In this document: in pieces, positions 1 through 60,250 of the stretch | Layout of the letters: each line of letters opens with the position of its first letter | How positions within the stretch are numbered: the stretch's first letter is position 1 | Source of the DNA: Mizuhopecten yessoensis | Taxonomy: Eukaryota | Length of the DNA: 64,000 nt | Assembly (NCBI RefSeq): GCF_002113885.1 | Contig: NW_018405225.1 | Span: forward strand, 659,029-723,028 | Reading direction: 5' to 3' | Made by a program: the position numbers and the translations under genes | Notes under the pieces: model-generated | Databases searched by the model: none | Seen by the model: the letters and a program-made list of their open reading frames with translations, nothing else | Told to the model about the DNA's origin: nothing

Positions 1-3000
1 CAGCCAGTCATGAAACTGTAAGTAACGCAACTGTCAGTCACAAAACTGCTAGTCACAACGCAGCCAGTCACAACAAAATCAGTCAAAACACCATCAGTCA
101 CAACACAATTAGTGACAACACAATCAGTCACACAACTGTCAATCACATCACAATCACAAAACAGTATGTCACATCACAATCAGACACATCACAGTCAGTC
201 ACAACACAATCAGTCACAAACTGTCAGTCACAACACAGTCAGTCACAACACAATCAGTTACAACAAGGTTAGTCACAACACAGCCAGTCACAACACAGCC
301 AGTCACAATACAATCAGTCACAGCACTGTAAGTCACTCAACTGTCAGTCACAACAAAATCAGTCACAAACTGTCAGTCACAACACAATCAGTCACAATGC
401 AGCTAGTCACAACACAGTCAGTCACAACACAGTCAGTCAAAACACAGTCAGTCACAACCGAATCAGTCACAACACAATCAGTCACAACACAATCAGTCAC
501 AACAAGGTTAGTCACAACACAGCCAGTCACAACACAGCCAGTCACAATACAATCAGTCACAGCACTGTAAGTCACTCAACTGTCAGTCACAACAAAATCA
601 GTCACAAACTGTCAGTCACAACACAATCAGTCACAATGCAGCTAGTCACAACACAGTCAGTCACAACACAGTCAGTCAAAACACAGTCAAAACATGGTCA
701 GTCACAACACAATTAGTCACAACACAATCAGTCACACAACTGTCAATCACATCACAGTCACAACACAGTAAGTCACATCACAATCAGTCACATCACAGTC
801 AGTCACAACACAATCAGTCACAAACTGTCAGTCACAACACAGTCAGTCACAACACAATCAGTCACAACACATTCAGTCAAAATACAATCAGTCACATCAC
901 AGTCAGTCATGTCACAGTCGGTCACATTACAATCAGTCACAGCACTGTAAGACACAACATAATCAGTCACAACACAATCAGTCACAACACATTCAGTCAC
1001 AGTCAGTCACAACACAGATAGTCACAACACAGTCAGTCAAAAATTTGTCAGTCACTTCACAGTCACAACACAGAAAGTCACATCACAATCAGTCACATCA
1101 CAGTCAGTCACAACACAATCAGTCACAAACTGTCAGTCACAACACAGTCAGTCACAACACAATCAGTCACAACAAGGTTAGTCACAACACAGCCAGTCAC
1201 AACACAGCCAGTCACAATACAATCAGTCACAATACTGTAAGTCACTCAACTGTCAGTCACAACAAAATCAGTCACAAACTGTCAGTCACAACACAATCAG
1301 TCACAATGCAGCTAGTCACAACACAGTCAGTCACAACACAGTCAGTCAAAACACAGTCAAAACATGGTCAGTCACAACACAATTAGTCACAACACAATCA
1401 GTCACACAACTGTCAATCACATCACAGTCACAACACAGTAAGTCACATCACAATCAGTCACATCACAGTCAGTCACAACACAATCAGTCACAAACTGTCA
1501 GTCACAACACAGTCAGTCACAACACAATCAGTCACAACACAGCCAGTCACAACACATTCAGTCACAATACTATCAGTCACAACACAATCAGTCACACAAA
1601 TGTCAATCACATCACAGTCACAACACAGTAAGTCACATCACAATCAGTCACATCACAGTCAGTCACAACACAATCAGTCACAAACTGTCAGTCACAACAC
1701 AGTCAGTCACAACACAATCAGTCACAACACAGCCAGTCACAACACATTCAGTCACAATACTATCAGTCACAACACAATCAGTCACACAACTGTCAATCAC
1801 ATCACAGTCACAACACAGTAAGTCACATCACAATCAGTCACATCACAGTCAGTCACAACACAATCAGTCACAAACTGTCAGTCACAACACAGTCAGTCAC
1901 AACACAATCAGTCACAACACAGCCAGTCACAACACATTCAGTCACAATACTATCAGTCACAACACAATCAGTCACACAACTGTCAATCACATCACAGTCA
2001 CAACACAGTAAGTCACATCACAATCACTCACATCACAGTCTGTCACAACACAATCAGTCACAAACTGTCAGTCACAACACAGTCAGTCACAACACAATCA
2101 GTCACAACACAGCCAGTCACAATACAATCAGTCACATCACAGTCAGTCATGTCACAGTCAGTCACATTACAATCAGTCACAGCACTGTAAGTCACAACAC
2201 AATCAGTCACAACACAATCAGTCACAACACAATCAGTCACAATGCAGTCAGTCCCATCACAGTCAGTCAAAACACCGTCAGTCACAACACAATTAGTCAC
2301 AACACAATCAGTCACACAACTGTCAATCACATCACAGTCACAACACAGTATGTCACATCACAATCAGTCACATCACAGTCAGTCACAACACAATCAGTCA
2401 CAAACTGTCAGTCACAACACAGGCAGTCACAACACAATCAGTCACAACACAGCCAGTCACAATACAATCAGTCACATCACAGTCAGTCATGTCACAGTCG
2501 GTCACATTACAATCAGTCACAGCACTGTGAGTCACAACACAATCAGTCACAACACAATCAGTCAAAACACAATCAGTCACAATGCAGCTAGTCACAACAC
2601 AATCAGTCACAACACAGTCAGTCACAACACAGTCAGTCACAACACAGTCAGTCAAAACACAGTTCGTCAAAACACGGTCAGTCACAACACAGTCAGTCAA
2701 AACACAGTCAGTCACAACCGAATCAGTCACAACACAATCAGTCACAACACAATCAGTCACAATGCAGCTAGTCACAACACAGTCAGTCACAACACAGTCA
2801 GTCACATCACAGTCAGTCACAACACAATCAGTCACAAACTGTCAGTCACAACACAGTCAGTCACAACACAATCAGTCACAACACAGCCAGTCACAATACA
2901 ATCAGTCACATCACAGTCAGTCATGTCACAGTCGGTCACATTACAATCAGTCACAGCACTGTGAGTCACAACACAATCAGTCACAACACAATCAGTCAAA

Positions 3001-3660
3001 ACACAATCAGTCACAATGCAGCTAGTCACAACACAATCAGTCACAACACGGTCAGTCACAACACAGTCAGTCAAAACACAGTCAGTCACAACCGAATCAG
3101 TCACAACACAATCAGTCACAACACAATCAGTCACAATGCAGCTAGTCACAACACAGTCAGTCACAACACAGTCAGTCACATCACAGTCAGTCACAACACA
3201 ATCAGTCACAAACTGTCAGTCACAACACAGTCAGTCACAACACAATCAGTCACAACACAGCCAGTCACAATACAATCAGTCACATCACAGTCAGTCATGT
3301 CACAGTCGGTCACAACACAATCAGTCACAACACTGTTAGTCACAACACAGCCAGGCACAACACAGTCAGTCACAATGCAATCAGTCACAACACACCACAA
3401 TCAGTCAAAAATGTGTCAGTCACTTCACAGTCACAACACAATCAGTAACATTACAGTCAGTCACATCACAGTCACAACACAATCAGTCATGTCACAGTCA
3501 GTCATGTCACAGTCAGTCACAACACAGTCAGTCACAACACAGTCAGTCACAACACAATCAGTCAAAAATTTGTCAGTCACTTCACAGTTTATCACAATAC
3601 ACTCAGTCTAAAATCTGTCAGTTACTTCACAATCAGTCACAACACAGTCAATTACAACAA
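1..3660. repeat. 15-bp minisatellite (AGTCACAACACAATC/AGTCACAACACAGTC) with higher-order repeats
   Basis: Continuous array running from the window start. The marker tgtcaatcac recurs at 1411, 1601, 1791 and 1981 (190-bp period). It explains the TTQSV/SHNT/VTDC ORFs. Confidence 0.97.
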
Positions 3661-5477
3661 CAGCCACAAAAATCTCTCATTGAAATTCATATCTGATAAG
3701 ATATTCTAACAACTGGTTATAGACTTGAACAATGCAGGTGTCTGTTGTGAAGATAATAGCTTATACAGATATGAAACGGGTAACTAGAAGGAAAAACCCT
3801 TATGATGAGAGTACAATATATTCCAGTGCAAAGCCTAACTGGCTCTCCCTGTCATTTTGTGACATATTGACAAGGTCACTAATAATGGTTTAGATAAACC
3901 CATGTAATATAGACCTGTCCTGTGTCCTCATTAGTAATATAAGATATCACAGCTTAAATGCCTGGCCCCAGTGGTCACTCACTGGTCACTTTACTGGTCA
4001 GACGGAGCTGACTCTAACTATGACATCCACTGACCCTGGTGCTCAACCTTGGGTTTGACAGAATCCTGGTTCCATCAAATTGGCTAGAACAATTCAGCAC
4101 CCCAGCCATTACCTAACATGGCTCATTTGTCAAAGCATGGGCAGCTTGAATAATTTTCATCTAAATTATTTTCAGGTATTATTTCTTCTTATCTTATAAA
4201 AATAAAAATAAATTTCATGTTATATTGTTCAGAGTTTAACAAATTGTGAATGAACCTTTTGGTACAATATATCATCTAATCTGTAAAGTGTTTTTTGTGA
4301 TTGGAAAGTTTTCTTTATGTCTGTTTTTAAGTTAAAAAACCAATAGGGCTTTGAATTTAGGACATGATCCAGACATAGCTGAATTGTGAGATGCCATTAG
4401 TAGCCATTATGTTGTAGTGACAGTGCCAACCTTCAACTGTCACAGTACAACAACCAAATGTAGGTATAGGTAATAAAAGCAGGTCTGAAACCGCCACAGC
4501 AGGTTTATAGTAACCATTATCTCACTTAGTCCCACTATAGTCCGCCTTTAAAACTACTTAAATGTGTTAAAAACCCCATTAAGCCTGGAACAAACAACAG
4601 ACAAAGAACATCAGCTTATTGAAGTAGATGTTAACAAAATCTGGAATGGCAAAAGATGGCCAATGTTCTTGGCTTAAAGAAAAAGACAAGTCGTTCTTGA
4701 AAGGTCATGACATGCTTATACAATGTAAAAAGTAAACCTGTGATAATTGTATGTTTTCAATCTTACTGAAAATACATAAAAGCAAATCTGTTAACTTAGG
4801 AAAAATCAGATAAAATTCTATCCCAAAATAACACATCAAATTAAAGATATATACTGATTCTGTACATTTTGTAAACACTTTGATATTTTAGTGTTGGAAC
4901 TGCCAGGGCTAGTGCTTATATTCAGGAACTTTAAGAAAAAACAATAAAACTATTAAATAGTTTACCATTTATAAACTTGTAATATGACAAGTGTATGTTA
5001 TGATGTGCAAGGATTAAGAAGTTCTCAATTTAATACTGACTGATTAAAAAAACGGGTGAAACGATGACCCGTTAAGGTCATAATTTTTTCCGGGTGGAGG
5101 GGTCTTGTTTCCGGGTGTGACCTGGACAATCCAGGTGAGTTGACAGGTACATTTGTATGTACTGTTTAGGGGTGCTACAGTCAGTCGTCCTATTCAGTCA
5201 GTTTAAAAAAGATGTATGTGGAAACAATTAGATATGTACATGGATGTATCCTCACGCAACAAAGCAAAGTCATCTGAGATCAGTCTCTCACAGTTCATTT
5301 GTTCACATTTAAAGTATTTGGTTTTTGGAAGAATGTTGCACATGCATGGTCTATAAAAAACCAAGGAAACAGTCACATGTGTGCCGTAAACCCTATATTA
5401 CTGTACATGATTGTTAGCCAATGAAAAGTGTTGTTACAACACTGACATGGTAGCTAGAACATGCAATATTTCTCAGT

Positions 5478-7549
5478 AGCGTAGATAGAGGAGACATGAG
5501 CGTAGATAGAGGAGACATGAGGGTAGATAGAGGAGACTTGAGCGTAGACATGACCCTAGATAGAGGAGACATGAGCGTAGACATGAGCGCAGATAGAGGA
5601 GACATGAGCGTAGACATGAACGTAGATAGAGGAGACATGAACGTAGATAGAGGAGACATGAGTGTAGATAGAGGAGACATGAGCGTAGATAGAGGGGACA
5701 TGAGCGTAGATAAAAGAGACATGAACGTAGACATGAGCGTAGATAGAGGAGACATGAGCGTGGATAGAGGAGACATGAGCGTAGATAGAGGAGACTTGAG
5801 CGTAGACATGAGCCAAGATAGAGGAGACATGAGCGTAGACATGAGCTTAGATAGAGGAGACATGAGCGTAGGTAGAGGAAACATGAGCGTAGACATGACC
5901 TTAGATAGAGGAGACATGAGCGTAGATAGAGGGGACATGAGCGTAGACATGAGCGTAGATAGAGAAGACATGAGCGTAGATAGAGGAGACATGAGCGAAG
6001 ATAGAGGAGACATGAGCATAGACATGAGCTTAGATAGAGGAGACATGAGCGTAGATAGAGGCGACATGCGCATAGATAGAGGAGACATGAGCGTAGATAG
6101 AAGAGACATGAGCGTAGATAGAGGAGACATGAGGGTAGATAGAGGAGACTTGAGCGTAGACATGAGCCAAGATAGAGGAGACATGAGCGTAGACATGAGC
6201 GCAGATAGAGGAGACATGAACGTAGATAGAGGAGACATGAGTGTAGATAGAGGAGACATGAGTGTAGATAGAGGAGACATGAGTGTAGATAGAGGAGACA
6301 TGAGCGTAGATAGAGGTGACATGAGCGTAGACATGAGCGTAGATAGAGAAGACATGAGCGTAGATAGAGGAGACATGAGCTTAGATAGAGGAGACTTGAG
6401 CGTAGACATGAGCCAAGATAGAGGAGACATGAGCGTAGACATGAGCGTAGATAGAGGAGACAGGAGCGTAGATAGAGGAGACATGAGCATAGATAGAGGA
6501 GACATGAGCGAAGATAGAGGAGACATGAGCATAGACATGAGCGTTGATAGAGGAGACATGAGCATAGGTAGAGGAGACATGAGCGTAGATAGAGGACACT
6601 TGAGCGTAGACATGACCCTAGATAGAGGAGACATGAGCGTAGACATGAGCGCAGATAGAGGAGACATGAACGTAGATAGAGGAGACATGAGTGTAGATAG
6701 AGGAGACATGAGCGTAGATAGAGGGGACATGAGCGTAGATAAAAGAGACATGAACGTAGACATGAGCGTAGATAGAGGAGACATGAGAATAGATAGAGGA
6801 GACATGAGCGTAGATAGTGGAGACATGAGCGTAGACATGAGCGTAGATAGAGGAGACATGAGAATAGATAGAGGAGACATGAGCGTAGATAGAGGAGACA
6901 TTAGCGTAGACATGAGCGTAGATAGAGGAGACAGGAGCGTAGATAGAGGAGACATGAGCATAGATAGAGGCGACATTAGCGTAGATAGAGGAGACATGAG
7001 CGTAGACAGGAGCGTAGATAGAGGAGACATGAGCATAGATAGAGGAGACATGAGCGTAGATAGAAGAGACGTGAGCGTAGATAGAGGAGACATGAGCGTA
7101 GACATGAACGTAGATAGAGGAGACATGAACGTAGATAGAGGAAACATGAGCGTAGATAGAGGAGACATGAGCGTGGATAGAGGAGACATGAGCGTAGATA
7201 GAGGAGACTTGAGCGTAGACATGAGCCAAGATAGAGGAGACATGAGCGTAGACATGAGCATAGATAGAGGAGACATGAGGGTAGATAGAGGAGACTTGAG
7301 CGTAGACATGACCCTAGATAGAGGAGACATGAGCGTAGACATGAGCATAGATAGAGGAGACATGAGGGTAGATAGAGGAGACTTGAGCGTAGACATGAGC
7401 CAAGATAGAGGAGACATGAGCGTAGACATGAGCTTAGATAGAGGAGACATGAGCGTAGATAGAGGCGACATGCGCATAGATAGAGGAGACATGAGCGTAG
7501 ATAGAGGAGACATGAGCGTAGACATGAGCGTAGATAGAGGAGACATGAG
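5478..7549. repeat. 21-bp (ATGAGCGTAGATAGAGGAGAC) plus 12-bp (ATGAGCGTAGAC) composite minisatellite
   Basis: Units are directly visible. Both lengths are multiples of 3, which gives 710-aa ORFs on both strands. Confidence 0.97.
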
Positions 7550-7695
7550 ATATCAGTTTTACTGTATTGTTGCTGGCTGTACATGTGCAGATTGTGACCG
7601 CAACATGAAGGATACTGACTTAGCGTAAATCACAGATTGTATAACCGCTCTGGCGGCACACTTGTTCCGATATTAATTAAAAAGTTCAGTGTTTT

Positions 7696-9134: not shown

Positions 9135-11662
9135 AAGATAATATATCCCATTAACTTTGACTTTAAGGTAAGAATTGCTGAGAATTAGCTTAACGGTTCC
9201 TGAATTCTGCATCATCAGTAACATTGAGAATTAAGAGAAACACATTGTCTGATTTACCGCTATACTCCCATTTGACTCCGTTGAGAAACCACCACTTCTG
9301 TTGTGGATTTGAACTCAGACACTGTAGGTCAAGTTGGATGGTAAGGAAGTCCCTCTGAGATAAACAATATGGTTAAATACGGTGCTTATACACATAGTTA
9401 CTTGGTGGTCTTCATTGATACTAGATATAACATCTAGTAATGGGAATGGGTATTACAGTGGCTGTTTGGTCAGACAAGATGTCCTTGTCATTAATTCTGG
9501 AGGTCTATGATCCAGATTAATACATATGTATTGTGTCTGTGACATGACATTTTTATGGGCTAGCACTATAAATTCTTATATATTTTGTGTTAAAATGTAT
9601 AGGTATCTATACTGACAGGTAAATCTTACCTGTCTGAATCCTGGTACTGGAGAAACTTGACTGTCTGGCACACCCTGAGGGGGGTGTACTACAGAGGGTA
9701 TAGGGGTCTGATGTCAGATATCATAGGGACTGAGACCACAGTCAAACTTCAATATATCTACAATATGTATTTCTCCGTTTGTACATGTACGTTTGTACCT
9801 AAACAGGCGTGGATCAAGGAGGGTGTGGGCTTAGGGCGATAGCTTCCTGATCAGGGTCCAGGGGCAATTAGTCATGGTAGAGTAGAGCAAAGTAAAAGGG
9901 TGTGGGTAGGGGGAGGGGTTTATTTAATAATGTATCACTCATTTATAACATTAACATTTTTCCCTTGGGGGGGGGGTATACATGTATATCTATGTGAGGA
10001 TGCTCACAATCTCTTGTCTCTAGTTCCACATGAAAACGTTATGGCGTTGAGGGAAGATGATGACATTTTCCTGAAATTTCAAGTTAACGAGTCTCCATAA
10101 TTAAGTAATTTTTCGTGAAACTGGTGATGGGGAATGATACCGCACACAAAATCAAGTGAAAATGTTTGCTTTAAAGTATACGTCTCTGACCGTTGTCAGA
10201 CTTTTTATAGACAACATGACCACAATAGATGAGTGGCAAAACAACATAACTTTTTGTTTGTCTGTGCTCAATACATGTGAGTGTAAATCCTTTCAATTTA
10301 AATATGCTTGGCTTTTTAATATAATAAGTTTTCAAAACAATTGCTTGCAAATCAGAATGACATGATCTTCAACATCATCTAAATTACACACATTACGCAC
10401 TCGACGATTCAATGTTATGATATCGCCCTTTTTCTAATTTTAAGTTATGAGGAGATAAATTTTTTTTATTTCTTTCAGATATTCTTTTTGTATTGGTTTA
10501 CGCAGGTAGTTTTGTAGATCAAAATATATCTATAAAAACATGCTTTTGAGAATAATCTATTTTTTCTGCACATTCTTCTCTAAAGATATCAATAAACCTT
10601 TCTTTAATTTATTAATAAATGTTGTTGTCTTTAATATAATGTTTCCAAATATACGCTAGGCCAGGTTAATCCCAGCCTCTGATATATACTACATGTCCAC
10701 TGTGTAACTTGCTAAAGGCGCTAAGTGGTACTAATTGGTCAGCTGTAAAAGGTCAATTATCTTTTTCATTGCACTGTGTAAGTTCATAGGTACACTAGCC
10801 CGGAACCGCTTGACTGATTTTTGACACCTTTATAATTACCACACACAGATAGGGCACTCCGTTAACAAACTTACTATAGACAGAGACGTATACAAGTCTT
10901 TGTCATAGACAACAAGGAATCACACTATATTTTCTCAGGAACTCAGTCACACGATGACATTTTTTTTTTAATAAATTAGGAATTCCAAGTTAAATATTAG
11001 TTTACCTTGGTTAGGCATTGTTGTGAAATGAAATTGTGCCTGGGGCTGTCATTTCCTGATCGAGGGACAGCCAAAGTATCTTACCTGTAGGTTTTTACCT
11101 TGAACTGATTTACCTGTATACAGCTGAACGTGATGGATAGACAATGAACTGGATTAATTGACATGGACTTAATTGCCTTGAAATCACAGAATGTGACTTT
11201 AATCAGGTACAACACATCAGAATCCAATGTGACCACAGGTGAATGGTCAATGCATTATCACTGCCTAGATTCTCAGGTATATCATATTGAAAGAAATGTA
11301 TCTGTCAGCGGGTGGTCATGTTGCCCTTACAACCTTTATAACGGCCACTAAAGTTGTTTATACCTTAAACAAGGAACAGGTCATTACCACATGCCTGTTA
11401 TTCAAATTACCCCTATAAGGCCTAGCTGCTGGTGTGCCAGGGAACACACAGTAGGCCCATGGGAGGAGGGCTGTTACGTCCATGTATGTGTAAACCATCA
11501 TTTTTGTGTGTTTTTTTCCTTCACACAATTATGATAGTTAGAATAATTTTCACGTAATGCGGTTTATAATGATTTTTTTTTTACAATTCGTTTCGACAAA
11601 TATATATTCCGTAAAATTTTCAACCGAACGTTTCATAAACGCTTTTTAAATAGAAAGATGTA

Positions 11663-11792
11663 GACGGAAGTGCTACGGAAACGATACGGAAGTGCTACGG
11701 AAACGCTACGCAAGTGCTACGGAAATGCTACGGTTATGGTAGGGAAGTACTACGGAAATGCTACGCAAGTGATACGCAAGTGCTACGCAAAC
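11663..11792. repeat. 11-bp CpG-rich tandem repeat (GCTACGGAAGT/GCTACGGAAAC), possibly the subterminal repeat of a degraded DNA transposon
   Basis: About 11 degenerate units inside a CpG-rich patch at ~11550-11840. Confidence 0.75.
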
Positions 11793-14700
11793 GGTATGCT
11801 GAAAGTGGAACAGCGAACATGTACGGGTCTGTACCTCCTAAGAACCTCCCGTTTCCCCTAAGTAACTTTCCTAGTAACTCCATAGACTTTCTTGATCATT
11901 GGCTTTCCAATGTTTCCAACATTTGTCAGCAAGAGGTCATGCCATTTTCTGTCACGTACATGTTCTCTGGGGTATTGAACTCCTCTTCCCCTTACTCTCG
12001 CATATGTTTTGGGTTTATCTCCCCTTATGTTTATTTCTGATGGATTACCTCCCTTGTTCCTGGTTCTGTTATTTGTTCTGAGCACAAATTAATGCACTCT
12101 TTATCAACATCAACCTCGGTAAATAACTTATCTCTGCATCTCTGCCAAAATTATATTTTAAAAAAGGAACTTTCAGTGACCTGAGGATTCATGCCAGACA
12201 CAATAATTTGTTTGATTTTCATTAAAGAGTTCCTCAGCCTATCACCTAATTATGATATTCTTCTACCTACCTCCACCCTTTAGTATCCACCCTATCACAA
12301 CTCACCATCAAATTAATGATAAAAAAATCCCCTTAAAATCTGTTTATTACAATTAGCTAATTTTGAGTTTATTGCCGATGTTCATAGTAAAATACATATC
12401 AAATATTTCCATCACAGTTTGCTAAAAAATTAAATTGCTGTCTTAGATAAAGTGATACAGATGTTTTTGGAGAAAAAAAGAAACTACCGAAAACCTTGAG
12501 AATTTCTTTAAGATGTATTGTAGGGCCTTGTAGAGATCCGAAATAGAACAAATACGTGTATACAATTTTGTGTGATATTGAATTTTTTGAGAGAGGGCCT
12601 GGCTGTTAGACTAAGCAGTGGTAAAGTTCCTATTATTAATAACAGGAGCTGCCGGATCCATGGAAACAGGTTGGTTTCCAGGGAAGATCTCGATCCCCTG
12701 TCATGTGTATGTAAGGTGGCTACAGATTATTTATCATTAGGGTAGCCGAAGAAGACCCCAATATGGAGCTGGTAATTGTTCGTATTCAGTGGGGATGATA
12801 ATGGTCAGAGAAATGGTCAGATTGATGAGAGCGGACAGTACATATAGTGGACAATCCATCTGTAATTATATAGATTTGTAAAGCATCTATCATCAGGACT
12901 GCAGAGTATAAAGTCCTGTTAGCTTACACATTGTACAGAGAATTAAGGCTAGATTTATCTCCCTTTTCATGATTAGGATTACCTAAAACATTCTCTAATG
13001 TTGAGACTGGTTGCATTTATTTGTACCTTTTAAAAGTGCCTTTAATGAGTTTTCCTTTTACAGATGTTAACAGGTTATATTGAACCACTTTTTACATGTG
13101 TCAGCTATATATACATATAGCATGTCCCCTTCAGTAGTCACCTAAACTACTGCTCAAAAGGAAATGTTTATTACAAACCCTGGGATTTAAGGAAAGGGTT
13201 TCATTATTTTATTTTGGTATCTGTCCTGTATGTTTGTTGATACATGCTTATTCATTGAGATTTCAACAGTTTTTGGATTCATCTGTAAAATCATTTTTTA
13301 TACTTTTTCTTCAAAATCAGGGTAACATAGTGAATATGTATTTGACATGTCTTTCTAACATGATGTTGACTGACGGATGTAAGCTGAAAATAAACTGAAA
13401 ATAAGGTTCAAGCAAGTCTCATACAGCTGTCAATACATCAATGTCTTGGTAATGCGAGGTCATATATTCCCCCTGTCCCAGGAGTACATCTAATCATATC
13501 CAGAAATATCACTTTCCACTTTGTGAAGGTGGGAAATATGATATTTTTCTTTGATGCAATTACTTTTATGAATATGAATTGCTTCTCCTTGAGTGCTGGT
13601 GACGCCTGTTTTCTTATAATGGTAAGTTCTTCAAGGTCACTTGCAATTATTTGTTGATTTTCTGTTGAAACAACATTCATGAAATAAATTAAAACAGTAT
13701 TTTTTTTATTTATTACTCAGATGATTTCTACACTTTTGCGTTGTTTTCAATCTATAACTCTGCAGAATGAAGATGAATTAGAAACACTTGTCTATCAAAT
13801 AATTTGAAACTTAAAACACACATTACAAATGTGTTTAAAATACAATCCCCCCCCCCTCTCCCAAATATATGTATCCTAATATTGTATAATTGGACAGAGG
13901 TATTTTCACAAGGCCGCAGTTGTCAAGGCATCTGTTCGTCTATGGTCCTTAAACAACCATAACTGATAGAATGTAAAACATAAACAAAGTATCCTTATTT
14001 ATATATATTGACTAAAAGTTTAAAATACATTTATTTTGTGATGATACATTAATTACCATTGATAAATATCCCTGTTAATTTAAAAAAGTGAATGTTTGTA
14101 TTGTTAGTGTAGAGTTACAAGAGTAATATCAGTTTTATAAGATTTATTGAAACCTAGTTGTTAGTAAACAAATCATACCAAATGAATAAAAAAAATACCT
14201 ACACTCAATTAAAAGTACATTTGTCTTATTCTCAAATTTTAAATGAATAAATACCCCATACAAATAAAAAATCAGAAATAAAATTCAAACAATGAGCAGT
14301 ATCAAGAGATACCGAACACAAATAAAATAGATTTAATTATAGATATAGCCTCTTAGAATATACTTGGACGCAAATTTGATTTAAACAGAAATCAAAAATA
14401 AAATCAAAACAAAAGTTACTGAAACTCAAAAAAAAAAACACTAAAATAAAAACACGCCTAATTTAGTCACTTCTAAATATACTTACTGATAAACTCAAAT
14501 CCATTCATACCTAAATTCAACTGAAGAAGGATCAGTATGATTAATACTCAATACATTACAAGCTGTTTAACCTAGTGTAAAAGCAGGGCTATAATTAGAC
14601 TGATTTGTAGCTGATGGAACCAATATTAAGATGCTATCCTGAATATTAAGTTGTGTGGCTGGAGAAAGCTCACTGAGGTTGAAGGAATGAGTGCATTGTC

Positions 14701-18538: not shown

Positions 18539-18600
18539 AAATCAATTGGTGGACGGATCACGGAAGAGAAAATCTTGGTGATGCATCACCCTATTTTCAG
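18539..18600 (+). CDS. NOS1AP: NOS1AP/CAPON-like PTB adaptor, internal coding exon (KSIGGRITEEKILVMHHPIF-R)
   Basis: Acceptor tttttctgcacatttcag| at 18538 and donor AG|gtttgt at 18601. The peptide resembles the vertebrate CAPON segment DESKMLVMQDPIYR. It ends in phase 2 (AG) and the first base of the next exon completes codon AGA. Confidence 0.88.
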
Positions 18601-20183: not shown

Positions 20184-20292
20184 AATTTTCTATGTGTCAC
20201 ATGACTCCCAGGACCTGAAGATCTGGAGCTACATAGCTAGAGATGGACCCACCAATGTGTTCAAATGTAATGTGTTCAAGGCTTATAAAAAG
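20184..20292 (+). CDS. NOS1AP: NOS1AP/CAPON PTB-domain exon ([36 protein letters not shown])
   Basis: Acceptor ttttttccttgtag| and donor AAG|gtaagg. Near-identical to the CAPON PTB signature [29 protein letters not shown]. Phase 2 in, phase 0 out. Confidence 0.96.
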
Positions 20293-21692
20293 GTAAGGCT
20301 TTCAACTTTTTCAGTGACACAAATTGCTCTATACTTTCGTTGTACAGCAAACATCCAAGATCATCACAGACGACCTTGGCTAAGTGACACGATCTACCAC
20401 TTTATGTTGGAGGTCCTAAGCTATAGATACAGTGGGTAGAGTGGTGGACTCCAATTCATTCTGTGTATACCAATGAAGGTTTATCAATGGTATTTGTTTC
20501 AGCACTTTTTGACTTCGAAAAAATAATTAAGGGACATAGCACTAATTAAAAAGAACAAAATAATGTTCTTAACTGATTAGTAATATTGCATGGTTAATCA
20601 AGAGGGCTGGGTCCTCCTGGTTTAACAGCTGTGATTGATGTCAGCTGCCTTGTCACCTGTACGACTTTTGTGCAGTAAATGTAGGAGAATTCACTCTACA
20701 AGCTCAGCGTGAATGTATTCCTAATCACTCCAACACATGTTCATTTTTGTTTTTCCAATTATTTATGAGAAGATGTTTGGAAATTAAGTGTGTTTTGTGT
20801 AAGATTTATTGATGGAGTTATACACAATCACACTTTCGTAATTGCTAAACAGCTTGCCTGAGCCTCAGAATTAAATGCTAAACGTGCAGGTTTGTTTTTG
20901 AGTGGTAAGGAGAGATAAGCACATGTATTACACTTCAAAACAACAAACATGAAGGAAAGTAAAGGATATGTAAGTATTATATGATAACACTTTGTAGATG
21001 AATCATAATATTCTTCAACCCAGATGAACAAGTATTAAATTTTGTCAGGATTTTCAATCCACAAAAAAAAACCCATCTACTTGGGGAAGGGACATAACTC
21101 AATATTGAAAAAGTTGAATTGAGTTTTTGGCAAGGGAAAGCATTATAAATTGTTTTCAATTTTTAATCTGCACTTTTCTCACCATTTTCCTGGGTTCATT
21201 GAAGTACACTGAAGTACGAAATGTGTGCAATGCAAGTTTTCTTCTATATATTGGCTCAGATTTCAATTTTGGGGATTTACTCTTGTTGCAAATTGGTTTT
21301 ATATTTTGGCACCTGAAGTATACATTGTTCTAAACCTGTAGTTATAGTGGAAGCATCATTCCTTCTACAGTATTCTTAGAGGTCATCAAGTGTTATACAC
21401 CGAAGGTGTGAAATGGAACAGAACTAATCTACACAATTTCTTGGAATAAACAGAACATATATGGTTAATTTACTCTATCATGAACTAGATATAAAAGACG
21501 TGCCAATGTTTTATTTTATTTTCAAAGTGTGTGTGGCTTCTCTAGGCTTCATGTACTGTTCTGACTGAAAGAACTAATTCATGTACTATGCTGATGAAAA
21601 TTAAATCTAAACTTTATTTAAAACTTAAAAGAATTGATTTATAGGTTTTGCCCGTTTTTCAGATGTGTACTTGTGTTATTCCTAGTAGTTTT

Positions 21693-22405
21693 CCAAGTGT
21701 TGGTATCATGGGTTGCCAAGTGTTGGTATCATGGGTTGCCAAGTGTTGGTATCATGGGTTGCCAAGTGTTGGTATCATGGGTTGCCAAGTGTTGGTATCA
21801 TGGGTTGCCAAGTGTTGGTATCATGGGTTGCCAAGTGTTGGTATCATGGGTTGCCAAGTGTTGGTATCATGGGTTGCCAAGTGTTGGTATCATGGGTTGC
21901 CAAGTGTTGGTATCATGGGTTGCCAAGTGTTGGTATCATGGGTTGCCAAGTGTTGGTATCATGGGTTGCCAAGTGTTGGTATCATGGGTTGCCAAGTGTT
22001 GGTATCATGGGTTGCCAAGTGTTGGTATCATGGGTTGCCAAGTGTTGGTATCATGGGTTGCCAAGTGTTGGTATCATGGGTTGCCAAGTGTTGGTATCAT
22101 GGGTTGCCAAGTGTTGGTATCATGGGTTGCCAAGTGTTGGTATCATGGGTTGCCAAGTGTTGGTATCATGGGTTGCCAAGTGTTGGTATCATGGGTTGCC
22201 AAGTGTTGGTATCATGGGTTGCCAAGTGTTGGTATCATGGGTTGCCAAGTGTTGGTATCATGGGTTGCCAAGTGTTGGTATCATGGGTTGCCAAGTGTTG
22301 GTATCATGGGTTGCCAAGTGTTGGTATCATGGGTTGCCAAGTGTTGGTATCATGGGTTGCCAAGTGTTGGTATCATGGGTTGCCAAGTGTTGGTATCATG
22401 GGTTG
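21693..22405. repeat. 31 x 23-bp minisatellite CCAAGTGTTGGTATCATGGGTTG
   Basis: 713 bp = 31 x 23 and I saw no variant units. It explains the three overlapping PSVGIMGCQVLVSWVAKCWYHGL ORFs. Confidence 0.98.
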
Positions 22406-23104
22406 CACATCAAGATAAACAGTATTTGGTTTTACTTTATGAAATGTTTGAGAAATAGTTTTGTGAAATGTGTTTCTTTAGGGACTTAAGCTTCACCTAG
22501 GCGGTAATCTTGTATTTTAGGGTTGAGCTGAGCGGAATTATGTTTTACAATGTAATTCATACTTGGTTCCTTTTATTTTTCTCAACAAGATAGCTTTTCA
22601 AGAATGATGCCTAACCCTTGTATCTATCAATCGTATTCCAAAATTTAACAATACCATACTGACGACATCCTTTGATTGGTTGGGTTTGTAGATTTACCAA
22701 TACTTTGCCTTGTTTTCATCATCCAAATGTTTTCTGGGGTAATATGTCGATCAGTACGAACTCTGGAATGGTGTATTATATTTAGCCATTCATCACAGTT
22801 TCCTATGGTAATCATAATGTATCACACAATCAATGGTGAACCAGCTATCACTGTTGGTCAGAATAAAAAAACATGTGTATCAAAATAACTCTGATGTAAT
22901 GACTGCTGACAGGTCATAAGAATAGCCTTATTTCTTGATTTCTTTTTAACCAATCAGAATCCAAACTTTTAAAGGCTGCTGATCAGACCCATCTACCTAT
23001 CTCCTTAGTGTGATACCTCCAGGAGAAAATCGACATGTTATCAGATTGTTTATGTTTTCCTTGGCAGACATTTTGGCAACAGATGGTAAATGTGGTAGTG
23101 TGTA

Positions 23105-25161
23105 AACACTTGATATGTCTGAAGGAGTCCACAGAAGATTATCAGACGGCGAGGGGGATTACTTCAGTATGTGGGCCTATATTTATACCCCTTCCTCATC
23201 ATTGGCTTAAAACATATTATGGAACATCAGGTTTTAAGTTCTCCTCGCTATACACCGAGTACTGTAAGATAGTGCTCTAGCTAGTACTTTCATTAATCAG
23301 AGAAAATGCAAATTCATCTTAATACATAGGTAGGAATATCATCTTGGCCTTCTGCCCCAGAATTCAATTCAATTCGAAGTCTTCCCTGTCCCCTTCAATA
23401 TCCTTGCTGCTCCATCTTACCCGGAGTCTTCCCTGTCCCCTTCAATATCCTTGCTTCTCCACCCTGCAGGCCTGCTGTATATCTTGTTACTAAGACTGTT
23501 CCTCATTGCTCTGCCACCCTTTGCCTCCCTGTTACTTATCTCCCCTCCCCACTGTTATAATATCCAGTTTAGCTAAGCAATGCATCTGGAACAGAACAAC
23601 TATTTTTGTGTATATGATAGAAATACAGAACCCAGATTACCATACGTTCTGAGGTTAGAGAGTAGTAGGAGGAGGAGGAGCGGGGCGGGGCACATTGATG
23701 TATAGCTGAATATTTCAATTAAAATACAACACTTGATATGTCTGAAGGAGTCTACAGAAGATTATCAGACGGCGAGGGGGATTACTTCAGTATGTGGGCC
23801 TATATTTATACCCCTTCCTCATCATTGGCTTAAAACATATTATGGAACATCAGGTTTTAAGTTCTCCTCGCTATACACCGAGTACTGTAAGATAGTGCTC
23901 TAGCTAGTACTTTCATTAATCAGAGAAAATGCAAATTCATCTTAATACATAGGTAGGAATATCATCTTGGCCTTCTGCCCCAGGATTCAATTCAATTCGA
24001 AGTCTTCCCTGTCCCCTTCAGTATCCTTGCTGCTCCATCTTACCCAAAGTCTTCCCTATCCCCTTCAATATGCTTGCTGCTCCATCTTACCTGAAAACTT
24101 CTCTGTCCCCTTCAATATCATTGCTGCTCCATCTTACCCGAAGTCCTCCCTATCCCCTTCATTATCCTTGCTGCTCCATCTTACCACAAGTCTTCCCTGT
24201 CCCCTTCAATATGCTTGCTGCTCCATCTTACCCAAAGGCTTCCCTGTCCCCTTCAATATCCTTGCTTCTCCACCCTGCAGGCCTGCTGTATATCTTGTTA
24301 CTAAGACTGTTCCTCATTGCTCTGCCACCCTTTGCCTCCCTGTTACTTATCTCCCCTCCCCATTGTTATAATATCCAGTTTAGCTAAGCAATGCATCTGG
24401 AACAGAACAACTATTTTTGTGTATATGATAGAAATACAGAACCCAGATTACCATACGTTCTGAGGTTAGAGAGTAGTAGGAGGAGGAGGAGCGGGGCGGG
24501 GCACATTGATGTATAGCTGAATATTTCAATTAAAATACAACACTTGATATGTCTGAAGGAGTCTACAGAAGATTATCAGACGGCGAGGGGGATTACTTCA
24601 GTATGTGGGCCTATATTTATACCCCTTCCTCATCATTGGCTTAAAACATATTATGGAACATCAGGTTTTAAGTTCTCCTCGCTATACACCGAGTACTGTA
24701 AGATAGTGCTCTAGCTAGTACTTTCATTAATCAGAGAAAATGCAAATTCATCTTAATACATAGGTAGGAATATCATCTTGGCCTTCTGCCCCAGGATTCA
24801 ATTCAATTCGAAGTCTTCCCTGTCCCCTTCAATATCCTTGCTGCTCCATCTTACCCGGAATCTTCTCTGTCCCCTTCAATATCCTTGCTGCTCCACCCTG
24901 CAGGCCTGCTGTATATCTTGTTACTCAGACTGTTCCTCATTGCTCTGCCACCCTTTGCCTCCCTGTTACTTATCTCCCCTCCCCATTGTTATAATATCCA
25001 GTTTAGCTAAGCAATGCATCTGGAACAGAACAACTATTTTTGTGTATATGATAGAAATACAGAACCCAGATTACCATACGTTCTGAGGTTAGAGAGTAGT
25101 AGGAGGAGGAGGAGCGGGGCGGGGCACATTGATGTATAGCTGAATATTTCAATTAAAATAC
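23105..25161. repeat. Tandem triplication (623/811/623 bp) with a nested 47-bp minisatellite
   Basis: Units start with AACACTTGATATGTCTGAAGGAG at 23105, 23728 and 24539. The length difference of 188 bp equals 4 x 47 bp (GAAGTCTTCCCTGTCCCCTTCAATATCCTTGCTGCTCCATCTTACCC). Confidence 0.96.
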
Positions 25162-39620: not shown

Positions 39621-39910
39621 ATACAATATAGAAAATGTCTGCCACCTGGTGGTGAGGAACTAAATATGATACAACATAGAAAATGTCTGCCACCTGATGG
39701 TGAGGAACTAAATATGATACAATATAGAAAATGTCTGCCACCTGGTGGTGAGGAACTAAATATGATACAACATAGAAAATGTCTGCCACCTGGTGGTGAG
39801 GAACTAAATATGATACAACATAGAAAATGTCTGCCACCTGGTGGTGAGAAACTAAATATGATACAACATAGAAAATGTCTGCCACCTGGTGGTGAGGAAC
39901 TAAATATGAT
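39621..39910. repeat. 48-bp x 6 minisatellite carrying a CTCF-consensus core in each unit
   Basis: Unit ATACAACATAGAAAATGTCTGCCACCTGGTGGTGAGGAACTAAATATG. The minus strand reads CCACCAGGTGGCAG in 5 of 6 units. Confidence 0.95.
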
Positions 39911-46671: not shown

Positions 46672-49304
46672 GTAAGAGGTGTTAAAAGTTTTATATCCAT
46701 TCTCTAGCAGATGAATAACCTGTATTTTAAAATATAATTCTTTTTAGAAACATTTATATATAATGATACATTTTAGCATTTTAAAATATTTCAAACAAAA
46801 TATTTTTGTATTTAATTTAGTAAATAGAAACTAACAATGCTTTGGAGAGTGGGTTTTGTGTGTGAATTATTATCAACACATATAACATTAAAGAAAACCT
46901 TTGAAACATCACTGTAATATTGCTTTAAATGTATCTGATTTGAATGAATATAACCATAATTGAAACCTTCTGGGTAACTTTCCCCTAGGGTTATTTTGAC
47001 TGTAGCTATCCCTGTATTGTACGCACATGTACACACCTAGATAGAAGATGATAGATGTGTAGATAAATCATCATCACATGGATGTTTGTATGCTATACTG
47101 GTCTGTTATTACCACACAACAGTGATTAAATTACTCTTTCTCTCTCTTTCCTTGTCTCAGGTTCGCTTAGCTTTCACTTATGTACCCATCAACGTCGACT
47201 TTTCGGCACTTTCGTACATAGTTCTAGTATTCCTGTATATCATATTTTCACTTTCATATTTTTTTATCTTTCACTTTCTTAGTAGAAAGAATGTTCATGT
47301 AATTACAGTGAATTCTCATTCATGTTAGCAGACTAATGAACAACTTCAGAGGGATTGGGTGTGTTATTCGTTAAAATGTTTTTCGTCTGAGGTGATTACG
47401 TGTACCTATAAAAACCTTGAGGTGCAAAGAACTGCCAAAATATGAGCTGTTTTCGAGTGGGTAGGAACATTTTGTGCAAATCTTCAGCATTTTCTGTTCT
47501 GTCTAGAAGTGTGTGATCAGTAGCGGACTGCTCACTTCAGTGACAATTCTGTTGTTGTCATAGTTTAAGCTCAACGGAAGTTTGCAATTTTGTGTGGTGA
47601 ATATCTTTTCCTGTAAGAATCCTAACAGATGGGATAATGATTTCAAGAACATTGTGCCTGGATGTTGAAAATTGTGCTTATACTATGCTTTTAAGTCTGA
47701 GGAAACATTTTAAAATGATGTATTTATGACTTTCGTGCTGTGAGAGACAATTAACTAAGATAATATTGTCAAATGGTGTAAGAGCTAAAACGACACTTTC
47801 GGAAGTTCATTTTAATGAAAAGACACATAGCTCTCGATCAACTTGATTGAAAAATAATTTGGAAACCTAAGCGTGAACTTTCTGTACCTGAAGGCCTAGT
47901 TGAAAGATATCTGTCAATCTTGTGCACTTACCCATCTTCCCTTTAGAGCATAAACTGAAAATATATACATGAAGAATATTCTAAAGAGCCTGTCATCTAC
48001 TAAAAGTGGAAAAACAATCAGCAATTTTCCTTCCTTGGTGACTTCAACAGTTGAAAGCTGTAATATTTTACTGAAAGCTTTTTGTCAAACGAGACACAAT
48101 CATTTGTCAGACTGTAGACTTGTGTAATTCATTTGGTTTCAAACCAATTTCCGAAATCTTGATGTTTTTCAAATTGCTGTCACTTTATTAAGTTACCATT
48201 GCCAACATTTTGGAACAGTTCATTGACTTCTATCCTCGCCGACAGTATATATCAAATATTCTCAGATGCTTTCCAAATTATTTTTTAAATGTAGTTTGAT
48301 CTTCAACACAGAAACTGGAAATCTCATATTCTTAAATGTTTTCATGGAATTCTGTAGAAATGATGGAGGAAGACAGTTTGGTAAATTGATGATGTCGTCT
48401 GCTGATGAAATACATATCTGACTTAAATATGTTGTGAAGTCAAAGAATTGAACAAATTAATATTTAAGAACCAACTTTTGTGGTGTATCAGACTTTTTTC
48501 TGCTGAATTTGGAGTACAAATATCTGAATGTTTTTTTTACATTTCCGTTGATCAAAAATTTGCGTCGTGTTTTAACTTGTAGCTTCTGTGTTCCAACATT
48601 CTGCCATTGGACAAAAAGACGAAGATCATATTGGCAGGATGTTTCACGGTTTTCTCCTCATCCTTACAGTTATGTGATTTTGATAGACAACGGCTTTGCA
48701 ACAGATAACTGCACCTCACGCTATCAGCACCTGTGGGGGGGCTCCCATGACTGTTGGAGGTCAACAAAGGTCATTGTGTCTACTGCAGACATAATTTGAA
48801 AAAGATCTGTCTGTGTACACCAAAGATAACAAGACTGATAAGTTTTCATGGTGGAGAGTTCCAAACCTCAGAGCAGAACTGTGAGGGATAGTTATGTTCT
48901 TTTGAGTGTAAATGATAGCAGACTTAATCGCGGATATATCTCAAAATATAGTTGTAATATGGAGGCTATCTGGTGAAGATCCATGTCGTCATTTGGAAAA
49001 AAAAGTAATTTATGATGCACCTATCATGTACCAGGAAAACATGTACTGTTTATCTGTGTGTGTGTTATAGTTTAAGTCTTATCACGTCCAGGGGAGATAA
49101 TTTGGATTAACGTTTGTTTTGTGTTGACATATGATAGTGCTGTAAAATTATTCTTCCTGGAGTTACCAAAAAAACACTTCAAACATTTATGGGGTTAAAG
49201 TTTTACAGTAACAATGTATTTACATTATTGATGGAAAAAAAGAAAAAACTTTTCACAAATCTTTTGACCAAAGTGAACACATCTATATCAACATCAGCCA
49301 AACA

Positions 49305-49433
49305 ATGTATTGCAATAACTACAGTCGCTACGGATCGTCCGACAGTCACATTCAATTCGACGATTATGGACCACATCCTCAACTCAGAAGATCTGAATCT
49401 AATCAGAGCAAGAAAAAGAAATCAAAATCAAAG
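49305..49433 (+). CDS. Putative alternative first coding exon of a short NOS1AP isoform (MYCNNYSRYGSSDSHIQFDDYGPHPQLRRSESNQSKKKKSKSK)
   Basis: ATG in caaacaATG context, 43 stop-free and CpG-rich codons, then a phase-0 donor AAG|gtttgt compatible with the 55850 acceptor. An in-frame TAA lies upstream at 49209. Confidence 0.65.
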
Positions 49434-49792
49434 GTTTGTTAAAACTCTCAAAGTGTAAGAACTGAATGCTATTAACCAGTGATCTATAATTCAACGTGTT
49501 AAACATTAATACTATTTTGTTCTGTTTTGTTATATTTTGTTATATTGTTGTTGTAATTGATTGTTTGGTGTATCAGGAGCATTTATGTTGAAAGATGATA
49601 TTATGGCAACTAATCTCTAGCTGGTATTTTCTCATAAATGTGTAATATAACGAAATCTAGATTCAAGTTTTAAACTGCTTTCCTGTCCTGTTATTTCAAG
49701 GAGAATTGTACTCTAATCATTTTCAACTCTTCTGACATCCCAATTAAGTGAACAATTTCAGATACCTTTATTGTTTATTAAAACATGTTTCA

Positions 49793-49935
49793 TATATATA
49801 TACAATGTACTTTATAGATATACAGTATATATACAGTGTATTTTATAGATATACAGTATATATATATACAGTGTACTTTATAGATATATACAGTGTACTT
49901 TATAGATATACAGTATATAGATATACAGTGTACTT
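49793..49935. repeat. AT-rich TATACAG/TATAGA low-complexity repeat
   Basis: Iterations of TATATACAGTGTACTTTATAGA. Confidence 0.85.
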
Positions 49936-50498
49936 TTAATGTCATTGGGTGTCCATGGCCAGAGCTCACATCACTGGCCAGATCTACTTTGGGCTGACTG
50001 GATATTCTGATAATTTGTACCTATCTGAATTGGACCAAAACTGCTCAATGAATTATTTACTTCTATTTGATATTTTTTGCTTAAACAGTTTTGATAAGTA
50101 AAATTGACACATGTCAAATGAAAGTGATTTTCTGTATGCAACAATACGAAGTTTTGATTTTGTGAGGTGTTTATCTATAATCTTTTCAATATCAGTTGTT
50201 GAAGTAAAAAACAAGTATAGGATTTTCCTATATCTTTTGAAATTACAGGTTCGCTAACAATGCACTTCAAAAGCAACAAAGTTATTAAAATATTTAACTT
50301 ACAGATTGTAATATATGTACAATGTATAGACTTTGTCAGGCCATATTACAAGTTCGTAGTTGGTTAGAACTGATCTAATGCTAATGTTGATGGTTCTGCT
50401 TCTTTTAAAATACACATACACTATCTGAAAAATCAAGTCTAATCATATTCTTGATTCAAAGGACTCCGCTGGGGGTGCCAATTTGGACCAACTTGTGG

Positions 50499-55849: not shown

Positions 55850-55994
55850 AGTCAGGCTATGCGAATTGTCCGAACAATTGGTCAGGCTTTCGAGGTTTGT
55901 CACAAGCTTACAATCCACCATGCTGCCCAAAACAATGATCCAGAACGTAGCAGCCATTTCTCAGAAGATTTAGAAGCAGGAGACTCAAAGCTAG
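55850..55994 (+). CDS. NOS1AP: NOS1AP/CAPON exon, PTB C-terminal helix ([48 protein letters not shown]-)
   Basis: Acceptor tttgtttcttttcag| and donor G|gtaaat. [19 protein letters not shown] directly follows ...FKxxKK in CAPON. Phase 0 in (matching the 20292 donor), phase 1 out. Confidence 0.96.
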
Positions 55995-60101: not shown

Positions 60102-60250
60102 TAAAAGATAAGAAGGACACTAAAGAGGAAAAGAAACACGTGACCACGGGCAACAGTCCCTTGAAGAGTGAGGGCAAGGTCGTACCCCCGGCCGAGCTTG
60201 CCCTCCAACAGGCTCAGGACCTCCTCATCGCCATGGCAGCAAAGTCACCG
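60102..60250 (+). CDS. NOS1AP: Probable next NOS1AP coding exon (V-KDKKDTKEEKKHVTTGNSPLKSEGKVVPPAELALQQAQDLLIAMAAKSP)
   Basis: Acceptor ttttttttctattttactag| and donor CCG|gtgagt. The phase 1 entry matches the 55994 donor (G+TA = Val). GC-richer and stop-free. No recognisable homology, so the assignment rests on position and phase. Confidence 0.8.

Follow-up and report, generated by a model that had tools for sequence, protein, structure and literature searches.

The DNA segment between positions 49305 and 49433 is very probably the coding part of a genuine alternative first exon in the NOS1AP/CAPON orthologue of Mizuhopecten yessoensis, the Yesso scallop. It appears to be transcribed from an internal promoter and spliced to the exon at 55850, making the 599-aa isoform X2. 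Positions are those of the window, that is, the whole 64,000-nt stretch of DNA that was analyzed, and a slash in a splice site marks the boundary between exon and intron. The exon and its isoform are already known, as both are contained in RefSeq for two scallop species. In other words, they are real, not new, and the terms "hidden" and "novel" that a preliminary description of this DNA applied to them do not suit an isoform already held by the database for M. yessoensis and Argopecten irradians. The present analysis adds four elements to the database record: evidence that purifying selection acts on the exon in this one frame, the finding of the exon in Ylistrum as well, a probable pearl oyster homologue, and a very strongly conserved non-coding block upstream. 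The biology is that of an ordinary alternative-promoter isoform, in which an adaptor protein is made without its ligand-binding domain.

The proposed sequence of events is as follows. Transcription would begin within the gene, at a promoter in the 35.6-kb intron downstream of the last PTB exon, and the block at 48700-48870 may drive this promoter. Splicing would then join the phase-0 donor of the alternative exon to the acceptor of the shared exon (55850). The resulting X2 protein is expected to lack PTB-ligand binding while retaining the coiled-coil and C-terminal regions. Because it would keep these regions without PTB binding, X2 may work as a competitor of the full adaptor or as an uncoupled version of it, comparable to the PTB-less NOS1AP forms of vertebrates.

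Isoform X2 and the loss of the PTB domain

Two rounds of protein searching led to the isoform. A phmmer search with the shared exon (55850-55993) as the query returned a 710-aa scallop-like CAPON protein (P0003), together with protein models that start just before the residues SQAMRIVRT. When P0003 served as the query, two proteins of 597-599 aa that carry no PID domain were recovered (P0153 and P0154). The shared-exon search also contained matches of vertebrate appearance (P0009, P0040, and P0061).

P0153 is XP_021349741.1, a 599-aa M. yessoensis protein annotated as "isoform X2." Its first 43 residues match the translation of 49305-49433 without exception (43/43), SQAMRIVRT follows directly, and the window positions to which the protein maps are 49305, 55850, and 60102. 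Structurally, it does not differ from the model that had been drawn in the preliminary description. The sister isoform X1 (P0268; XP_021349740.1 / OWF52238.1; 704 aa) maps to 18539-18600, 20184-20292, 55850, and 60102. The 43 residues of X2 stand in for residues 1-148 of X1, and 556 of the 704 X1 residues (~79%) are kept. The RefSeq name of XP_021349741.1 is "rho GTPase-activating protein gacZ-like isoform X2," whereas CAPON-like is the name given to X1, which comes from the same gene. The "gacZ-like" name is misleading and is probably a naming artefact caused by low complexity.

P0154 is XP_069119482.1, a 597-aa capon-like protein isoform X2 of A. irradians, and it comes from a separate genome assembly. 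It shares with the M. yessoensis isoform a 43-residue N-terminus, the junction to SQAMRIVRT, and the lack of a PID in the precomputed Pfam listing. The N-terminus is orthologous, with 35 of 43 residues identical to those of M. yessoensis; the eight substitutions include a change of KKKK to KKKT in the basic run. The evidence for the junction between 49433 and 55850 consists of these two database proteins, both of which are Gnomon models. A literature search found no paper tying NOS1AP isoforms to scallops.

The two isoforms of M. yessoensis differ in their domain content. Pfam places a PID domain (PF00640) at residues 33-169 of X1 with an E-value of 2.7e-26, and no family was matched in X2 at E<=0.01. 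X2 keeps only positions about 118-137 of the PID profile. These are the positions matched by the shared exon 55850-55994 (E 0.008). The preliminary description had proposed a truncation that leaves the last PTB helix and the C-terminal region, and the domain content of X1 and X2 bears this out.

The features of the gene and its surroundings are collected in the table. The acceptor at 55850 reads ...ttttcag/AGTCAGGCTATG and is in phase 0, and a join from position 49433 is therefore in frame. The in-frame join to SQAMRIVRT had been predicted from the DNA alone; both splice sites are in phase 0, and XP_021349741.1 displays the junction. A further observation of the preliminary description, that the alternative exon ends in a Lys-rich run resembling the end of the canonical upstream exon, also holds, as exon 20184-20292 ends in the basic residues KAYKK and likewise in phase 0 (KAYKK/gtaagg).

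Table. Exons, splice donor, and conserved blocks of the NOS1AP/CAPON orthologue in the window
Feature	Position	Strand	Remarks
Canonical PTB exon, part of X1 and absent from X2	18539..18600	+	P0268 residues about 92-112; dN/dS 0.03
Final canonical PTB exon, upstream of the 35.6-kb intron	20184..20292	+	X1 only; the alternative exon takes its place in X2
Conserved non-coding block, candidate promoter or enhancer	48700..48870	.	90-95% identity to Ylistrum balloti (40-nt bins)
Second, smaller conserved block, possible core promoter or 5' UTR	49085..49140	.	165-220 nt before the ATG
Alternative first exon (very probable), coding part, N-terminus of isoform X2	49305..49433	+	43 codons; translation equals X2 residues 1-43
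Splice donor GTTTGT, phase 0	49434..49439	+	AAG/GTTTGTT identical in Y. balloti
Shared exon SQAMRIVRT..., last PTB helix and linker	55850..55994	+	acceptor for the canonical and the alternative upstream exons
Next shared exon VKDKKD...AAKSP	60102..60250	+	matches P0153 from residue 91; acceptor tag/TAAAAG, donor CCG/GTGAGT

The end of exon 60102-60250 was read at ...AAKSP; the tblastn span of residues 91-157 overruns the donor. In a 756-aa protein of Pecten maximus (P0151), the stretch homologous to this exon (KEKKDVKEEKKH...AAKSP) occurs twice in tandem, either through exon duplication or as an artefact of assembly or annotation.

Repeats are a further feature of the window. Large tandem-repeat arrays occupy 1-3700 and 5417-7625, in which several frames are open on both strands and ORFs reach 724 aa. 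The ORFs of these two arrays are repeat artefacts, not genes. Within the large intron, tandem or segmental repeats at 21622-22486 and 23000-25140 inflate ORF counts; their ORFs reach 278 aa and 144 aa, respectively, and recur in all three forward frames. A near-perfect array of a 48-nt unit (6.0 copies, 97% match) is located at 39621-39910. It had no blastn counterpart in the orthologous intron of Y. balloti and looks like a species-specific minisatellite.

The open frame and its conservation in scallops

The segment 49305-49433 is located 29 kb inside the 35,557-nt intron between 20292 and 55850, and it is present as a single copy in the genome (987.6 Mb in 82,659 contigs). It contains an ATG and 42 sense codons without an in-frame stop, and its last codon, AAG, ends at 49433. 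The ATG has an A at position -3 (acaATGt). An in-frame TAA is present at 49209-49211 and no ATG occurs between the two, making 49305 the first possible start. The donor that follows the AAG does not have the usual purine at +3. Its intronic hexamer is the same as that of a genuine donor of the gene, the one after position 18600 (cag/GTTTGT). The frame and the donor are therefore as quoted in the preliminary description, including the 43 codons, the good context of the ATG, and the hexamer shared with the donor after 18600. The encoded peptide is rich in Tyr and Ser and has a polybasic C-terminal end.

Evidence for the exon in a third scallop comes from Y. balloti. Among the annotated products seen for this species, the gene had a single one, and no such isoform was annotated among them. 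A tblastn search with the 43 residues against the Y. balloti locus gave one strong match, which lies in the orthologous intron (L002:67778-67909; 34/44 identical; E 3e-19). This search of mollusc DNA with the peptide had been proposed earlier as a check on the exon. The Y. balloti exon contains an ATG, 44 codons, and the same AAG/GTTTGT donor. The sole indel between the two species is 3 nt long and corresponds to one codon, and the two sequences agree fully at the start codon and around it (CAACAATGTAT). The identity between M. yessoensis and Y. balloti is 82.9% across the ORF and 10 of 12 positions at the donor, compared with 49% in the next 100 nt and 44% further downstream.

Many non-coding blocks of this intron pair also align at 70-79%. 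For this reason, conservation alone is not specific to an exon, and it is the frame-specific dN/dS that separates the segment from the other blocks. With the Nei-Gojobori method, dN/dS was 0.18 in the annotated frame vs 4.1 and 0.85 in the shifted frames, a rough estimate because it comes from one species pair and only 22 substitutions. In the annotated frame, there were 10.3 synonymous differences at 23.2 sites and 11.7 non-synonymous differences at 102.8 sites (binomial P of 0.003 for the synonymous excess). For the three canonical exons, dN/dS ranged from 0 to 0.10. Among them, exon 20184-20292 is 93.5% identical to its Y. balloti counterpart with zero amino-acid changes, and the shared exon 55850-55994 is 90.3% identical with a dN/dS of 0.10. 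A lack of codon-level conservation had been named beforehand as the outcome that would count against the exon. Such conservation is found in Y. balloti, where both the frame and the donor are kept. Judged by codon substitutions, the frame of 49305-49433 has been under purifying selection across scallop genera.

Could the segment be conserved without being translated from its ATG? It is conceivable, though improbable, that the exon is transcribed and conserved but that no protein is made from its ATG; it could, for example, be the 5' exon of a transcript that is non-coding or subject to NMD, or a regulatory element with a fortuitously open frame. The strongly conserved non-coding block at 48700-48870 lies nearby, as would suit such an element. 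Furthermore, ATGs are present upstream at 49214 and 49231, and they would interfere with translation if the transcript begins further upstream. However, the synonymous excess is confined to the annotated frame, and the indel is a whole codon. The context of the start codon is the same in Y. balloti, and the stretch carrying the ATG at 49231 is deleted there. These observations argue for an exon that is translated from 49305.

Is the open frame by itself evidence of an exon? The intron contains 55 different ATGs from which a run of 43 or more codons leads to a phase-0 GT, many of them within tandem repeats. An ORF followed by a GT is by itself not above chance in a 35.6-kb intron. Two more open frames overlap the segment, one of 106 aa on the plus strand (49138-49455) and one of 72 aa on the minus strand (49206-49421). 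Y. balloti has a deletion that spans the ATG of the plus-strand frame, so this frame loses its start there, and its dN/dS is ~4. The GC content of the segment is 33%, the same as that of the surrounding intron, and its 43 residues had no family match in Pfam. All of this would be consistent with a chance ORF beside a chance GT in an AT-rich intron, caught by gene prediction and not functional as an exon. Set against this reading, the same exon was modelled in two species, and it is intact in a third genome, that of Y. balloti, in which the ATG, frame, and donor are kept and the indel is in frame. The low dN/dS is limited to the annotated frame, and the identity falls abruptly right past the donor. 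It is this conservation together with the database isoform, not the ORF and the GT, that raises the segment above chance. A chance origin is highly improbable, and the comparison with Y. balloti has largely refuted it already.

Equally little can be said for an internal cassette exon between 20292 and 55850 in place of a first exon, a very unlikely arrangement: an acceptor-like ttttacag/t is present at 49201-49208, but entry there leads immediately to the in-frame stop at 49209-49211, the site is not conserved in Y. balloti, and translation in both RefSeq models starts at the ATG corresponding to 49305.

Upstream blocks and candidate exons in other molluscs

The alternative first exon is preceded by two conserved blocks. 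The larger one (48700-48870) is about 435-605 nt upstream of the ATG and is more conserved than the coding exons. As read from its sequence, it contains GATA-type sites (AGATAA and TGATAA), a CACCTG E-box, and AGGTCAacaaAGGTCA, a direct repeat with a spacing of 4. An Rfam scan of 48000-50000 gave nothing credible, leaving this block without a family. In the smaller block (49085-49140), 44 of 56 positions are identical to Y. balloti (78.6%) vs 44% in the following 119 nt. Together, the two blocks may drive the internal promoter.

Outside the scallops, the best candidate for an equivalent exon was found in the pearl oyster Pinctada imbricata (L003:27920-28006). It consists of 29 codons that start with MYYSNY and end with RRRKKR, and its phase-0 donor, AGG/GTAAGC, conforms to the consensus. 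The candidate is located in the same intron as the scallop exon, 766 nt before the shared exon, and it falls outside the one annotated product seen. In a six-frame translation of all the DNA compared (603 kb), the motif MY[YC][NS]NY occurred only at three exons, those of M. yessoensis, Y. balloti, and Pinctada. We lean toward regarding the Pinctada candidate as a homologue of the alternative first exon. In Crassostrea, no equivalent exon was found in the 2.1-kb intron. In Mytilus, a weak candidate alone was present (L006:47909-47953, ending in KSSKK/GTTAGT), and it is not claimed as an equivalent exon.

Short peptides joined to SQAMRIVRT also occur at the start of database models from Lottia gigantea (XP_009044319.1, P0068) and Batillaria attramentaria (KAK7504521.1, P0132), in which the peptide has 13-14 residues. 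In Lottia, the peptide has its own small exon of 13 codons (L005:10001-10039), located 434 nt upstream of the shared exon and ending in KNSKSKK/GTAATT (donor AAG/GTAATT, phase 0). Beyond the basic tail, it shows no alignable similarity to the scallop peptide. The CAPON gene of Lottia is divided between two models, one of 130 aa with the PID and one of 497 aa that begins with this 13-codon exon (L005:1-4028 and 10001-12885), and because of this split the Lottia start may be a prediction artefact.

The polybasic end and comparison with NOS1AP-S

A basic run is conserved at the end of the peptide, whereas a strict nuclear localization pattern is not. The preliminary description put forward an NLS-like or membrane-binding patch, a kinase-type site, and an adaptor that is moved elsewhere or competes, all of which are hypotheses. 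M. yessoensis (KKKK) and the Pinctada candidate (RRRKKR) both fit the strict K-K/R-x-K/R pattern; the run of A. irradians and Y. balloti is KKKTSKSK, which falls outside the strict NLS pattern. The motif RR[ST][ED]S is kept in all three scallops (M. yessoensis, A. irradians, and Y. balloti). What might the basic tail do? It may direct the protein to a particular place, or its purine-rich coding sequence may serve as a splicing signal. Another possibility is that the tail preserves the KAYKK-like context of the next helix, because the canonical exon also ends in basic residues.

A PTB-less form is known from vertebrates. NOS1AP-S has 211 aa, compared with 501 in the long form, and it carries 17 unique N-terminal residues and no PTB (PMC4735351). 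In rat neurons and cell lines, NOS1AP-S and a long-form construct from which the PTB was deleted act unlike the long form (PMC4735351). Furthermore, NOS1AP-S was not co-precipitated with nNOS from brain (PMC4735351). The human and rat NOS1AP-S resembles the scallop isoform in its short unique N-terminal peptide, the absence of the PTB, the retention of the C-terminal part, and probably also its internal start, and its effects are distinct from those of the long form. The two differ in extent. NOS1AP-S contains the C-terminal part only, without the middle region of the long form, whereas scallop X2 starts just past the PTB beta-sandwich and keeps the last helix and the coiled coil. In this respect, the artificial NOS1AP-L-deltaPTB (214-end) construct (PMC4735351) is the nearer match to X2.

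One tentative and rather unlikely extension is that the PTB-less isoform is old in molluscs, dating back at least to Pteriomorphia. It would then combine an internal promoter bearing a conserved GATA/E-box/DR4 module with a selected MYYxNY...polybasic peptide that gives the protein its own localization, and it would compete with the full-length form as a counterpart of NOS1AP-S made from a different position in the gene. If X2 does compete with full-length CAPON, the isoform would matter for how NOS signals in the nerve and muscle of molluscs. The case of 49305-49433 also indicates that a real alternative first exon can be recovered from raw sequence alone.
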